A stretch of 64,000 nt of DNA, from contig SMSO01000036.1 of NCBI GenBank assembly GCA_004764695.1, positions 2,649,489 to 2,713,488 of the forward strand. The letters are read 5' to 3'. This document shows positions 25,826-31,485 of this stretch, in pieces (positions within the stretch are counted from its first letter, which is position 1; the number at the start of each line of letters is the position of its first letter). Source of the stretch: Schizochytrium sp. TIO01. Its lineage: Eukaryota; Protista; Bigyra: Labyrinthulomycetes. The notes under the pieces are model-generated. The model ran no database searches, was not told the DNA's origin, and worked only from the letters and a program-made list of their open reading frames with translations. Both the position numbers and the translations under genes were made by a program.

Positions 25826-28800
25826 TTATTCCAATCTAAAGTTTGCGCCAACGATATCTGGTGTTAGCAAAGGTGACAAAAACTCTCTCAGAACGAGTCG
25901 AAGATTTCTATCCTGAATTTGTGCATTCCAGTACTCACGCAGACGTTCTGCGCGGAGCAACTGCCACGCCTCACGAACCTGCTCAAATGAATCAGGAAAA
26001 AATGGATCTTGCCCAAGCTTTTTCAAGCAAGTTCTCACATGAGCATGACAAGCTCGTGAATTCTGAGAACTAAACTCAAGACACCAAGCGCAGAAGTGAT
26101 GACCACAAGTATCAGTACCACACTTTACAGCGCAGCAACCGGCAAAATCGTGTACATATGCCTTACAGTTCGGACAACATGTGCTCAAGATCTTCTCTTG
26201 AATATGGAGTAAATGCCGTTGTGCGTCGCGATTCTGTTCATCTGCACGCAAAACTTCTGCTATGCGCCTTTGGATCTCCTTCTCCGCCCAAACTGCTGCT
26301 TCATTTTCTGCCTTCATCTTCGCAATCAACAAAAGATGATTCAAAGCTGTTGGTGCAAGACGAGTGATTTCTTGACCTGATATTCTTCCCCCACATTCAG
26401 GTTTCATGCATGTCATCGTTCCATCAGCATCCACTCTTACGTTAGCAAGTGGCTGTGACGCCGCTTCTACTGCAGATTTGATACAGTCTCTGCAAAGGAA
26501 GTCTCCCTCCTCGCAGCTCGTGCCCTCGGAAAGCAGATGCTCCTCCATGCATACTAGGCACATCTTGACAGGGATCTTAGGAGCTCCAAAAGCTTCATGT
26601 TGGAGTGCTTGGTGAGCAGTTGGACGCTGGCCAGGGTCTGTTGCTGTAAGAGCATCGATAAGTTTCTGCATTGCAGCGGTTCGCTCAGTAGGATACAGCT
26701 CCTTTAAGCTTATGCCCACAGAGTACATGTCCATCGCTGTTTCAAACCTATCTACAGGCCCATTCTGCAACTCGGGGGCAACGTACCGTGGCGTTGCCTG
26801 GAGTGATGTGTAAGTTGCAGTGTAGTCTGCAACCTTGATGCCGTCAAAGTCGCCGATCAATGGTGTCCCGTTGCTTGTGAGAAAAATGTTTTCTGGTTTG
26901 ATATCACAATGCACAATGCCATGGGTATGCAAATCCGCCACGCCGATAAGCAGGCCCATAGCAAGTCGGTCGCGCACTGCTTTGCCTTCGTTAGGATGAC
27001 TTTCAATCCACTTGGCAAGGTCACCTTGCTCGTAGAAAGGCATGAGGATACAGCCACGCGGTTCTCCATTAGAGGTATCCACAAAAGCGCCAGTGATACG
27101 TATCACGTGCTGAGACACCACGTTTCCCATATTTGCAGCTTGCCTGTAAAATATTTTGTGTTGGCTCGAATGGCCAAGTTGAAATTGTTTCAAAACCATA
27201 GTTTTACCAACGTTGTCAAGAACCTTTTGTACTCTCTTGCCACCTCTGGAAGAAAGGGGTTCGCCGACAGGCTTGAAGTCCGCGACTGTGACATTCGTCA
27301 ACCAAAGGTCAGAACATGCTACTTCAAAAACACCCTCTGCACTTACGTGAAGCCTTTCCAGCCAGGCTCTATCTTGCAGCAACTCTGGATAATGTTCCTG
27401 CGCATGTTGCAGAGTCTCAGCAAGCTTATGACGAAAAGCTTTGCTAAGGTCGATAGGGTTGCCTTGAGAGAGAATGAGCTCTTGTTTCGTGATTCGATTT
27501 CTATAGTGCTCTCGTTCTTCATCGTCCAGGTCCTCTGTTTCAAGTTCTTCTTTGGCTCTCTTTAGACTTTCTGTGGCTTTCCTCGACTTGTCAAGTTTCT
27601 GGTATAATGCTTCCACATCTGAGATATCCGGTCCTTTCAAACCCAGCATTGTATAGTTACATAGCCCAGAGAGTTCTTCTGGTGTGTACCTTTTCGCGTC
27701 ATTCAACGCAGTACTTTCAGAGTATCCTTCAAATCGAGCAAACGTTGAAGTTATTGCGCAAAGTATCTCGTACAAGTGGGCCCTGAGAGTATCTTCATGG
27801 AGGACTTCAAGCTCTTGCTTGGGAGCACTCTCAAGTTCAGACAACTCGGGTTGTAGCTCCATGACCTGCTCAGGTGTTCTCAGAGCAACCGATAATCCAT
27901 CACCAAGTTCTAGCTCAGACAATCGAGAGACGACGCGTTTTACAGCTTGTTGACTTCGCTCACCAATGTTGTTGGGATGACCTTCTCCACTCCTCTTGTA
28001 CCCTTCCACGCATTGGACAGCCTGAACAACGAGTTCTTGGCAGTGTTTGAAGTCATCTGTGCTGGTCTCTTCATCGACTGGTGAAAGGTTGATCTTTAGA
28101 TCGTTTACCAAACTTTCGACTCTCACTTTGAATTCTCGCACTGCACTCTCATCACTTTCGCAAAGGTTGGCGCGAACCCATGGGTGCACGACCTGCAAAA
28201 GTGAATGCAGGTGCCTCCGTTCGGTGTTCCGCTTTTCGATGAGGCTTGGCAAGCCATTTGCAGAGCTTGCACGAATCTGGTCTTGTAGCGTGTCAAGACT
28301 CTCTTTGGAGTTCTTGATGTCAGCGGAAACCTGTCGCAACTTCACTTGGCCAAAGTAGCCCTGAATCGCCGGTCGAACGAATTCCTCAAGCAGGGCAATC
28401 CCAGTCTGCAGGGAGTTTCTTCTGACCCCGCCTCGGTCCGCGCGCAAGTCCGAGACTTTCTTGGCAAGCTGCACCACATCAGCGAAACTCACGCTCGCTC
28501 CATCCGGCCGTTCTCTGAGGCGAACAAGAAGACGTAAGCAAACGAGCAAAATGATGTTGAGGCAGCAACAAAAGCAGACGCAAAAGTTAGGATACCCTCT
28601 ATCTCCATAACACAATTCGTGGAATGAATAATTACACGATCCCAAACAAAGATTAAACGCATGAACTTACCCAGATCCATCCAAAGTAGCAAGCCCGGCG
28701 CCATCAATGCCGTCTTGCTCGTTCTTGGGCTCTGCAGAAGGCTCACTTTCTGCCGTCTCTATGGAAGCATAGGGATCGAACTCTGACGAGAGATCTGCAA

Positions 28801-31485
28801 TGTCCTCTCCAGGAGAACACACCCTTCCGAACAATTCTTTAGGGGTTCCATAAAAATCGTCATAGCTGCATTTGATAAATCAATGAACGAAAGAAAGAGA
28901 ATAAAAGCGCTTGTTAGAAAAACGATGAACGCATCTAAAGACGGCCTCGAAAGTCCATATGGAGACATGGAGAGAATCAACGGAGGCAAGGCTCTGCGTA
29001 AGCTGGGAATAGCAGCAGAGGGAACGGAACTTACTAAATTGCAACAGAAGGACATGCTTTGTGCAGACACTTTGCGACGGCCTTTGCGCCCTCCGAGCCA
29101 ATGTTGTTGTTGTAAAGACTGTGTTTGTTCAAATGAATAAGTTTGTTTTGTTCATTCGTTGTCAGGAAAGACAGGTCCAGTCAGTTGATCTTGTTCTGTT
29201 TTGTTTTTCCTCACAATAAAAAGCAATCACCTCTTCTTCTTCTGCTGCTGCTGCTGCTGCCTATCAAATTATAGAGATTTCCTTCTTCTCTTTGTAAAAC
29301 AGAAAAGACTTCTTTGCCTTTCTTTGCGTACCCAACTACGTAAACTACTTAGGTAGTGTACCAGCAGTACTACAAACACCAAGCACTAAAAAGAAAGAAA
29401 GAAAAAGCTTGGTCCTGACTATTACGATAGCTTTCCCTCGTGGATGATTCCACAAACGTACTACAATTCTTGAAGGTTCTTGCATCCCTCGAGTGCCTTT
29501 GCGACGGCCTTTGCGCCCTCATCGCCAATGTTGTTGCTACCAAGACTGTGAGTATAAATGAATAAGTTTGTTTTGTTCATTCGTTGTCAGGAAAGACAGG
29601 TCCAGTCAGTTGATCCTGCTTTGTTTTGTTTTTCCTCACAATAAAAAGCAATCAGCTCTTCTTCTTCTGCTGCTGCTGCTGATCAAATTATATAGGTTTC
29701 CTTCTTCTCTTTGTAAAAAAGAAAAGACTTCTTTGCCTCTCTTTGCGTACCCAACTACGTAAACTACTTAGGTAGTGTACGAGCAGTACTACAAACACCA
29801 AGCACTAAAAAGACAGAAAGAAAAAGCTTGGTCCTGACTATTACGATAGCTTTCCCTCGTGGATGATTCCACAAACGTACCCAAGTTGAGACAGGTTCTT
29901 GCATCCCTCGAGTGCCTTTGCGACGGCCTTTGCGCCCTCATCGCCAATGTTGCTGTTGTAAAGACTGTGCTTGTTCAAATGAATAAGTTTGTTTTGTTCA
30001 TTCGTTGTCAGGAAAGACAGGTCCAGTCAGTTGATCCTGTTTTGTTTTGTTTTTCCTCAAAATAAAAAGCAATCACCTCTTCTTCTTCTTCTGCTGCTGC
30101 TGGCTGCCTATCAAATTATATAGATTTCCTTCTTCTCTTTGTAAAAAAGAAAAGACTTCTTTGCCTTTCTTTGCGTACCTAACTACGTAAACTACTTAGG
30201 TAGTGTACCAGCAGTACTACAAACACCAAGCACTAAAAAGACAGAAAGAAAGAAAAAGCTTGGTCCTGACTATTACGATAGCTTTCCCTCGTGGATGATT
30301 CCACAAACGTACTCTAATTCTTGAAGGTTCTTGCATCCCTCGAGTGCCTTTGCGACGGCCTTTGCGCCCTCCGAGCCAAACCAGTTGTTACGAAGACTGT
30401 GAGTATAAATGAATAAGTTTGTTTTGTTGATTCGTTGTCAGGAAAGACAGGTCCAGTCAGTTGATCCTGTTTCGTTTTGTTTTTCCTCACAATAAAAAGC
30501 AATCACCTCTTCTTCTTCTTCTTCTGCTGCTGCTGCTGCTGCTGCCTATCAAATTATATAGATTTCCTTCTTCTCTTTGTAAAAATGAAAAGACTTCTTT
30601 GCCTTTCTTTGCGTACCCAACTACGTAAACTACTTAGGTAGTGTACCAGCAGTACTACAACAGCAAGCACTAAAAAGAAAGAAAGAAAAAGCTTGGTCCT
30701 GACTATTACGATAGCTTTCCCTCGTGGATGATTCCGCAAACGTACTGTAAAGTTTGAAGATTCTTGCATCCCTCGAGTGCCTTTGCGACGGCCTTTGCGC
30801 CCTCCGAGCCAAGCCAGTTAAACTGAAGACTGTGAGTATAAATGAATAAGTTTGTTTTGTTCATTCGTTGTCAGGAAAGACAGGTCCAGTCAGTTGATCC
30901 TGCTTTGTTTTGTTTTTCCTCACAATAAAAAGCAATCAGCTCTTCTTCTGCTGCTGCTGCTGCCTATCAAATTATATAGATTTCTTTGTTCTCTTTGTAA
31001 AAAAGAAAAGACTTCTTTGCCTTTCTTTGCGTACCCAACTACGTAAACTACTTAGGTAGTATACCAGCAGTACTACAAACACCAAGCACTAAAAAGAAAG
31101 AAAGAAAAAGCTTGGTCCTGACTATTACGATAACTTTCCCTCGTGGATGATTCCACAAACGTACTCTAAAGTTTGAAGGTTCTTGCATCCCTCGAGTGCC
31201 TTTGCGACGGCCTTTGCGCCCTCCGAGCCAAGCCAGTTGCAAACAAGACTGTGTTTGTTTGTTTGTTTGTTTGTGAACAAGTGAGAGTAAGTATATGCCA
31301 TTTCCAACTTCTTCATTAGTGCCACTACAAGTTCAAAACTATTCTTCTTCTACAAAGCTGACTACTACAACACATCGACGATGTGATGCCTCCTTCTTCT
31401 GTCTCTTCCCTTCTGCATCGTGCACTTACCGAATCTCCGTCGTATCTTCTCTGATGTCCTTAATTCTCTCTGCCACAGTCATCAT
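25826..31485 (-). CDS. Spliced LRR - helical - protein kinase - RING - Rcat/IBR-type zinc finger protein, copy 1 (9 exons, 1147 aa)
   Basis: complement(join(25826..28514,28671..28865,29035..29118,29462..29545,29881..29964,30313..30396,30746..30829,31165..31248,31430..31485)). All introns GT..CAG, phase 2. Total 3444 nt, open. Begins MMTVAERIKDIREDTTEIR-LVCNWLGSEGAKAVAKALEGCKNLQTLD... Kinase motifs VLK, HCDIKPEN, DFDG, YVAPE, DMYSVG. RING CLVC..C..CRDC..CMKPEC. Then CPNC..GCCAVKC..CGHHFCAWC. Confidence 0.9.
29035..31260 (-). repeat. ~420-430-bp tandem array (6 exons), each = conserved intron + 84-nt LRR exon
   Basis: Exon 5' ends at 31248,30829,30396,29964,29545,29118 (periods 419-433). Length variation comes mostly from (CTT)n(CTG)n and (AAAG)n tracts. 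The intron sequence is unrelated to the 385-bp family. Confidence 0.95.

Follow-up and report, generated by a model that had tools for sequence, protein, structure and literature searches.

A spliced gene family in the ribosomal DNA spacers of Schizochytrium sp. TIO01 joins one-repeat-per-exon leucine-rich repeats to a predicted kinase and an RBR-like zinc module

In the thraustochytrid Schizochytrium sp. TIO01, spacers of the ribosomal DNA (rDNA) contain a family of spliced protein-coding genes in which leucine-rich repeats (LRRs), each with an exon of its own, are joined to a single large exon encoding a helical region, a protein kinase domain, and a C-terminal zinc module that resembles parts of RBR ubiquitin ligases. 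The gene described here lies on the minus strand at positions 25826–31485 of the window, i.e., the whole 64,000-nucleotide (nt) stretch of DNA that was analysed (GenBank assembly GCA_004764695.1, contig SMSO01000036.1). The family has at least 51 copies, and its members are probably soluble LRR-kinase-RBR-like receptors for intracellular recognition, which would couple sensing to phosphorylation and ubiquitination. The locus had been singled out in an original prediction made from the DNA letters alone. Here, we describe the structure, expression, and variability of the gene, its relatives, and the alternatives to a receptor function.

Gene structure

Read on the minus strand, the locus forms nine exons with a combined length of 3444 nt, i.e., 1147 codons and a stop codon, with no internal stop (Table 1). 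The model was built with scripts from a read-out of positions 28400–31600, the split codons being carried over each junction. All introns are bounded by GT..AG, with GTACGT or GTAAGT as the donor, and every exon is joined to the next in phase 2. Within the large exon, no in-frame Met occurs before residue 218. The model is not due to chance, since all 20 paralogous large exons that were retrieved have open frames and 84-nt LRR exons lie upstream in 21 of the 22 genes examined (from one to at least 19 per gene, with none in the remaining gene). No 19-residue stretch of the encoded protein reaches a Kyte-Doolittle mean of 1.6 (the maximum is 1.22), and exon 1 is hydrophilic; hence, the protein has no recognisable signal peptide or membrane segment, and it is predicted to be soluble and cytosolic. 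Re-reading of the strand reproduced the exon count, exon sizes, phase, and open frame of the original prediction, as well as its lack of a signal peptide or transmembrane segment, and the peptides quoted there (LVCNWL, LQFNWL, LRNNWF, LYNSNI, LGSNNI, and the cap peptide LYNNNIGSEGAKAVAKCLHKACPSVAI) are exact. Profile searches and structure predictions were run exon by exon.

Transcription and splicing

At the level of the family, the gene is transcribed and spliced at the predicted joints. Contigs from three RNA-like public runs (X1, X2, and X9) and one DNA-like run (X19) were placed on positions 25700–31600 at 90% likeness. The joint between the linker exon and the kinase-bearing large exon (28514|28671; CT..AC, i.e., GT..AG on the minus strand) is present in X1, X2, and X9. 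The joint between LRR exon 5 and the cap exon (29118|29462) is present in X1 and X9, and the joint between the cap exon and the linker (28865|~29035) is present in X9 with eight differing letters, which indicates that it stems from a paralogue. None of these three joints is found in X19. Contigs of X9 also connect the 3' end of exon 1 (31430/31438) to an LRR exon; their replaced letters suggest that they stem from paralogues. Depth in X2 is 0–7 in intron bins vs 40–840 in adjoining exon bins. Together, the spliced joints remove, for the family, the possibility that transcripts of the kinase exon never include LRR exons, which had been named as grounds for abandoning the original prediction.

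Two longer transcripts bear on the same question. The first, P0155 (MMETSP0960; 1240 amino acids, marked complete), is a single mRNA that encodes LRR_6 repeats together with Pkinase and the C-terminal module. It matches G000:C13:1153892-1156630 at 99% and so comes from the same organism, where it represents a diverged paralogue. The second, P0003 (603 amino acids), combines cassette-type LRRs, cap, linker, and zinc module with no kinase. Its best genomic match (86%) is G000:C33:2556927-2560814 (match at 2558427-2559314); the exon there has an open frame of only 298 amino acids, without the helical and kinase parts, meaning that kinase-less relatives exist.

Contigs of X9 and X1 also join LRR exon 1 or 2 straight to LRR exon 5 or 6 (29118|30746, 29118|31165, and 29545|31165). 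Since all LRR exons are phase 2-2, such joints would represent in-frame exon skipping; they could equally be paralogue contigs that were placed on the best-matching exons.

Table 1. Features of the minus-strand locus, its associated tandem array, and the paralogue in the next rDNA unit (window coordinates).
Feature	Position	Strand	Remarks
Exon 1, 56 nt	31430–31485	-	ATG at 31485; encodes MMTVAERIKDIREDTTEI plus two bases of a split Arg codon; donor GTAAGT
LRR exons 1–5, 84 nt each	31248–31165, 30829–30746, 30396–30313, 29964–29881, 29545–29462	-	Phase 2; ribonuclease-inhibitor (RI) type
LRR exon 6 (cap exon), 84 nt	29118–29035	-	Phase 2; cap peptide LYNNNIGSEGAKAVAKCLHKACPSVAI
Six-exon LRR block	29035–31248	-	One RI-type repeat per exon; introns 335–349 nt
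Acidic linker exon, 195 nt	28865–28671	-	Phase 2 at both ends; 16 acidic and 3 basic residues
Large exon, 2689 nt including stop	28514–25826	-	Helical region, kinase, and zinc module
Helical region (large-exon residues 1–400)	27314–28514	-	All-helical, no recognised fold
Protein kinase domain (exon residues ~405–645)	26579–27301	-	Pfam Pkinase
RING1-like zinc finger: C652, C655, C667, D/H671, C674, C677, C702-x4-C707	26393–26560	-
Helical connector in the place of the IBR, no Cys/His cluster	26183–26377	-	From the AlphaFold2 model and the list of conserved Cys/His
Rcat-like finger: C780-x2-C783-x9-C793(C794)-x3/4-C798-x4-C803-x4-C808-x2-C811-x10-C822-x2-H825	26027–26176	-
C-terminal helices and stop codon (25826–25828)	25826–26026	-
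Tandem array, 5.1 copies of a 419-nt unit (exon plus intron)	29070–31253		Tandem Repeats Finder
Paralogue in the next rDNA unit	59243–64000	-	Large exon in open reading frame 59243–61966, 90% identical

Variability of the LRR exons

Taken singly, each LRR exon matches only Pfam LRR_6 (PF13516), a ribonuclease-inhibitor type, with E values from 8e-5 to 0.03. These scores fall below the per-protein cut-off because one exon covers two thirds of one repeat. The 28-residue consensus LxxLxLxxNxIGxxGAxxLAxAL is visible in all six LRR exons. A recognisable cap exon (...LHK[AT]..S...) is present in 18 genes, mostly ~600 nt upstream of the large exon.

Variability was measured as amino-acid entropy per position across 108 non-cap LRR exons from 21 genes. 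The highest values, 3.0–3.6 bits, occur at positions 2, 3, and 26 and at the junction codon 28. Positions 5, 8, and 25 have values of 1.4–1.8 bits, and all others are below 1 bit. In the register L24-x-x-L27-x-L1-x-x-N4-x-I6, the variable positions correspond to the x positions of LxxLxLxxNxL, with the exception of position 8, located just after the invariant NxIG Gly. The variable patch straddles the splice junction. In solved LRR structures, the x residues of the LxxLxLxxNxL strand face the concave side. In the gene described here, the five introns are 95.9% identical in pairwise comparisons and the constant exon positions are 95.2% identical, whereas the variable codons (20 nucleotides) are only 40% identical. 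Hypervariability is therefore confined to residues predicted to lie on the concave face, within units whose introns are near-identical. Neutral drift in a tandem repeat could not give rise to such a contrast between variable codons and uniform introns, which points to diversifying selection, or to variants being exchanged while the arrays are otherwise homogenised.

Among the 108 exons from 21 genes, Trp at LRR position 5 (LxxNW[LF]) is restricted to LRR exons 1–3 of this gene (30313–31248). These exons look like a locally duplicated variant unit.

Two further LRR arrays, on the plus strand (496–4304 and 33693–38097), have 84-nt exons in the same phase and share an IG[SD]EGAKAV core. As the original prediction had claimed, the kinship with the plus-strand family is limited to this core and the exon phase: introns of the two families have no significant similarity (best blastn E 0.5), the one match being in the exon core (E 5e-7). 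Runs of tetranucleotides, perfect or near-perfect, flank the plus-strand arrays: (TTGT)38 at 4294–4444 and (GCTT)47 at 33396–33584.

The helical region and the kinase domain

The first 400 amino acids of the large exon are confidently helical in the AlphaFold2 model, with a predicted local distance difference test (pLDDT) score of 76. Searches of this region returned only noise from Pfam, no usable match in the ESM Atlas, and a best Foldseek E value of 0.049; VIA returned only generic helical bundles, with Z scores no higher than 8.0. Matches to ClyA-type pore toxins were not significant and were left unused, and a reading of the region as MLKL/HeLo-like found no support.

The kinase domain is recognised by Pfam Pkinase (PF00069) with 100.8 bits, vs a cut-off of 31.7 (E 1.1e-28). 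Kinases in the PDB match with E values down to 5e-19; the closest solved relative is 9gmp, and our literature search on PDB entry 9GMP found nothing relevant. All 24 sequences compared share K442 (the β3 Lys), D537, and D555, within invariant MVLK, HCDIKP, and GDFDG blocks, and at least 90% of them keep the catalytic-loop Asn (N542, in PEN). Within HCDIKPEN, DIKPEN is a signature of Ser/Thr-type kinases, and the H535-C-D537 (HCD) sequence marks the domain as a non-RD kinase. Kinase activity is plausible, though not assured.

A Pfam scan of the large exon and its helical part found no ROC/COR or P-loop family, and no NACHT or NB-ARC match; the sole trace, SesA at E 0.39, is noise. Because no NTPase domain was found, membership of the NLR/STAND and ROCO/LRRK classes was rejected.

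The zinc module

The C-terminal module consists of two clusters of predicted zinc ligands separated by a helical connector. In the RING1 cluster, seven Cys are invariant in 24 sequences, in addition to D/H671; the conserved ligands of the second cluster are C780, C783, C793(C794), C798, C803, C808, C811, C822, H825, and C829. In an AlphaFold2 model of the C-terminal 257 residues (pLDDT 83.7), the connector forms helices at model residues 75–81, 85–118, and 124–138. The top Foldseek matches of this model are almost all RBR ligases, with RNF216 (7e-4) followed by ARIH2, HOIL-1, parkin, and HHARI, and VIA-align gave a Z score of 10.4 over 172 residues against the RNF216 RBR. In an unbiased comparison with 48,161 representative PDB chains, the top 10 were all RING1 domains of RBR proteins (Z 6.0–7.8, root mean square deviation 2.3–3.5, 74–90 residues), ahead of ordinary RINGs (Z 3.8–4.9), the RBR values themselves being modest.

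The second finger has the spacing C-x2-C-x9-C-x4-C-x4-C-x4-C-x2-C, which we take to be that of parkin C418..C449, and also of the HHARI Rcat, up to the last two ligands. Alignment to the Ariadne-1 RING2 gives the same register, in which C793, kept in 23 of 24 sequences, sits at the position of the catalytic Cys. When a profile of the module alone was searched against the PDB, the finger matched both the Ariadne RING2 structure 1wd2 (E 0.021) and the parkin Rcat (E 0.49) weakly. It has strong homology to the domain that follows RING1-IBR in a DEAH-helicase protein of Pythium (hhalign probability 99.2%, E 1.3e-19). Because this same domain stands there after a RING and an IBR that Pfam recognises, the homology links the finger to the place that RING2 occupies in true RBR proteins. 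Taken together, thioester-type catalysis by the predicted module seems reasonably likely.

Family size, selection, and wider distribution

Searches of the 64-Mb genome with the large exon gave 51 scored matches, out of 323 candidates, with 58–91% identity; 44 of the 51 lack a stop codon. The family therefore comprises at least 51 mostly intact copies and is neither single-copy nor housekeeping; a common single-copy housekeeping family was the second ground on which the original prediction would have been dropped. The C-terminal module alone gave 73 scored genome matches. Sampled copies lie mainly in subtelomeric rDNA spacers. Across 11 copies of equal length, the median ratio of nonsynonymous to synonymous substitution rates (dN/dS) is 0.36 in the helical region, 0.17 in the kinase, and 0.23 in the zinc module; the large exon is under purifying selection.

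The wider family came into view only with a full hidden Markov model (HMM) search, a word-indexed homologue search having returned four proteins. With a profile of the zinc module, 2301 proteins scored at E ≤ 1e-3 among 1.84 billion, and the kinase lies beside the zinc module in 50 of the best 150 representatives. Partners on the sensor side differ: LRR_6 repeats in the same organism and in metagenomic proteins; ankyrin plus LRR in Hondaea fermentalgiana (GBG34335.1, annotated only as “Protein kinase, putative”); and a WD40-like propeller in Durusdinium trenchii (CAK8998897.1). Versions of the kinase–ligase module with ankyrin or WD40 sensors are found both among other stramenopiles and among dinoflagellates. 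Other proteins with the zinc module have no sensor, or have UPF1-like or DEAH helicases in place of the kinase. Given the varied sensors, the kinase and RBR-like pair constitutes an unannotated effector cassette of several stramenopile–alveolate–rhizarian (SAR) lineages, and the exon-cassette LRR version is its thraustochytrid elaboration. The architecture had originally been put forward as undescribed. Indeed, no paper on LRR-kinase-RBR-like proteins or on thraustochytrid LRR receptors was found in the literature searched; proteins with this architecture are, however, already in databases under no name or a generic one, such as the MMETSP transcript and the Hondaea protein. 

The rDNA context and LORE-TEARS

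The window comprises the last 64 kb of a 2.71-Mb contig and includes two rDNA units with 18S, 5.8S, 28S, tRNA, and 5S genes. Each unit repeats with a period of ~33.3 kb and consists of a plus-strand LRR array with a 385-nt repeat, 18S-5.8S-28S, tRNA genes, a minus-strand 5S gene, an LRR-kinase-RBR-like gene on the minus strand, and another minus-strand 5S gene. The gene described here thus lies between the 5S genes at 22194–22312 and 32739–32857. The paralogue in the next unit has its own LRR array with a 438-nt repeat (62490–64000), which runs off the contig end; no telomere repeats were found at that end.

A closely similar arrangement has been published for Aurantiochytrium limacinum, in which a ~421-bp unit, repeated ~5 times between one 5S gene and the next, makes up the Group 5 LORE-TEARS of the subtelomeric rDNA, and Group 0 comprises ~9 copies of a 385-bp unit upstream of the 18S gene (10.1101/2023.06.15.545109). 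Both groups were described as spacers without similarity in GenBank and with a possible role in chromosome-end maintenance (10.1101/2023.06.15.545109). The words “kinase” and “leucine” are absent from the text of that preprint (bioRxiv 10.1101/2023.06.15.545109). The array described here, with 5.1 copies of 419 nt between consecutive 5S genes, fits Group 5, and the gene that contains it is a short family member, with six LRRs. Unlike LORE-TEARS as published, however, each unit here consists of one LRR exon and its intron, within a transcribed gene.

Comparison with known systems

The closest known gene system is found in the brown alga Ectocarpus, in which LRR-ROCO and LRR-kinase genes that encode each LRR in a separate exon have been proposed as candidate immune receptors (Zambounis et al. 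2012, PMC3341825; Front Plant Sci 2024, PMC11378527). In both stramenopiles, one LRR is encoded per symmetric exon of fixed length, the number of repeats varies between paralogues, and the variable or positively selected sites are on the concave face. The two systems differ in three ways: (i) the exons are 84 nt here (a 28-residue RI-type repeat) vs 72 nt in Ectocarpus; (ii) the units here are near-identical exon-intron tandems inside rDNA spacers; and (iii) the effector here is a helical region with a kinase and an RBR-like E3, rather than a ROC-COR GTPase. As judged from sequence, the effector part is unlike all receptor classes that we found described in the literature.

Among RBR ligases (parkin, HHARI/ARIH1, HOIP, HOIL-1, RNF216, and RNF144A), the likeness extends to the RING1 fold, its C-x4-C last ligand pair, and, in the second finger, the Cys spacing of the parkin Rcat except for the last two ligands, with a conserved Cys where the catalytic one would lie. 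The module described here differs in that helices connect the two fingers where an IBR would be expected, the His two residues beyond that Cys is absent, the kinase is fused in cis, and catalysis is only predicted. PINK1 and parkin are a known example of cooperation between a kinase and an RBR ligase. Oomycete DEAH-helicase RING-IBR proteins (Pythium oligandrum TMW58426.1 and a Phytophthora “RING-type domain-containing protein”) share the helix plus Rcat-like domain at 38% identity; unlike the family described here, they have a helicase N-terminus, an IBR, and the Rcat-like domain in tandem duplicate, with no LRRs and no kinase. The tandem helix plus Rcat-like domains of TMW58426.1 lie at residues 1965–2079 and ~2111–2175 and apparently have no Pfam model.

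Non-RD kinases are over-represented among pattern-recognition receptor kinases. The plant receptors FLS2, EFR, and Xa21 combine an LRR sensor with a non-RD, Ser/Thr-type kinase, as does this protein; they differ in being transmembrane proteins with extracellular, plant-type LRRs, and their E3 is usually a separate PUB protein. In Arabidopsis KEG and MEKK1, an E3 finger and a kinase are found in one chain, with a plain RING or PHD finger and no LRR sensor.

A possible receptor mechanism

As a receptor, the protein would bind a variable ligand with its LRR arc, and the tandem exon-intron units, placed in recombination-prone rDNA and subtelomeres, would generate and reshuffle specificities. Ligand binding may release an autoinhibited state, upon which the kinase would phosphorylate itself or the E3 module in cis, as PINK1 activates parkin, except within one chain. 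The RING1/Rcat-like module would then accept ubiquitin from an E2, possibly through Cys793, and attach it to a target or to itself. The role would most likely be intracellular recognition, i.e., immunity against viruses or other parasites, or the discrimination of self from non-self.

A bolder extension, which we put forward tentatively as possible rather than probable, treats the rDNA spacers as a diversity generator. Concerted evolution and unequal exchange would keep the units uniform, while selection, or copying from other arrays, would keep only the ligand-facing codons diverse. The outcome would be a germline repertoire of cytosolic LRR receptors in which the kinase switches on an IBR-less, parkin-like ligase in cis, and hence an undescribed type of immune receptor in unicellular eukaryotes.

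Alternative interpretations

Several observations weigh against a catalytically active receptor encoded by this gene. In the kinase domain, the αC Glu is replaced by Gln (Q458, as aligned to 9gmp; Gln in 23 of 24 sequences), the GxGxxG loop is absent, the corresponding sequence reading SRGGKRV, and DFG has become DFD (D555-F-D). Lacking the αC Glu, the Gly loop, and the Gly of DFG, the domain may be a pseudokinase. In the zinc module, no conserved Cys/His cluster, and hence no IBR, is found between C707 and C780, where there are only modelled helices; there is also no His at C793+2, the sequence G-C793-C-A-V-K-C having Ala at that position. It is because of the missing IBR and His that we call the module RBR-like rather than a canonical RBR. 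Pfam RING and IBR matches are below threshold on sub-pieces (E 0.017–0.27; IBR 0.11–0.27), with nothing on the C-terminal 257 amino acids, and the Rcat-like finger matches the plain RING of RNF4 (E 1e-4) better than it does the Ariadne RING2. The original prediction of a Ser/Thr kinase thus stands with respect to its HCDIKPEN motif, for a kinase that is atypical in the features above and in being non-RD; likewise, the prediction of a RING1 with a Parkin/Ariadne-like Rcat pattern stands as to the RING1 fold and the Cys spacing of the second finger, for a module that lacks an IBR and the catalytic His.

The same features favour an alternative in which the gene is real and encodes an LRR adaptor, with a pseudokinase scaffold and with fingers that either activate an E2 as an ordinary RING does or serve only as a zinc-stabilised module for interactions. 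Such an adaptor is harder to reconcile with the invariance of the β3 Lys, HCD Asp, and DFD Asp and the near-invariance of the catalytic-loop Asn, with a dN/dS that is lowest in the kinase, and with the retention of parkin-like Cys spacing and of Cys793. Nor does it readily account for a finger that is homologous to the domain following RING1-IBR in helicase proteins, or for a RING1 that is nearer to RBR RING1s than to plain RINGs. We regard an adaptor as somewhat unlikely.

A second alternative retains a variable binding repertoire and assigns it to a purpose other than defence, either mating or allorecognition, or tasks concerning rDNA and chromosome ends (nucleolar functions or telomere maintenance). 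The regular placement of the copies between rRNA genes at chromosome ends fits such tasks, as does the chromosome-end role proposed for the repeats in the preprint (10.1101/2023.06.15.545109). A structural role for the DNA, however, leaves unexplained the open frames, the splicing, a dN/dS below 1, and variability that is limited to the binding face. Subtelomeres are, moreover, common homes of contingency gene families, which also counts against this alternative. We consider it distinctly improbable.

The transcript evidence has limits of its own, which likewise weigh against the receptor interpretation for this copy. The contigs are short, and no single read or contig covers the whole transcript; the runs were classed as “RNA” by software, as a guess; and, because contigs were placed at 90% likeness while copies are 80–91% alike, the joints prove the architecture for the family and not for this copy alone. 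At 28515–28629, X1 also has unspliced contigs over the 156-nt intron that precedes the kinase exon, at a depth of 72 vs 387 for the spliced joint, which could reflect intron retention, pre-mRNA, or carry-over of DNA. These contigs, and the publication of the repeats as spacers without GenBank similarity, might suggest that the 419-nt repeat is a non-coding spacer with LRR exons that are chance frames, next to a separate kinase gene or pseudogene, a reading that is very improbable and already contradicted by exact GT..AG joints in three RNA-like runs and none in the DNA-like run, by open, same-phase 84-nt exons in nearly all genes examined, by the late first Met of the large exon, and by transcripts P0155 and P0003, which combine LRRs with the C-terminal module.

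Implications

Of the readings considered, we therefore continue to favour a soluble LRR-kinase-RBR-like receptor. At chromosome ends, a class of repeats published as spacers becomes a large, expressed gene family. After brown algae, this family is a second, independent stramenopile case of candidate cassette receptors with one LRR per exon, and it defines a kinase and RBR-like module that several protist lineages combine with different repeat sensors. Should the receptor role prove true, recognition and immunity in heterotrophic marine protists, which are hosts of mirusviruses, would open to experiment, and RBR enzymology would gain a natural variant that lacks the IBR and is fused to a kinase.

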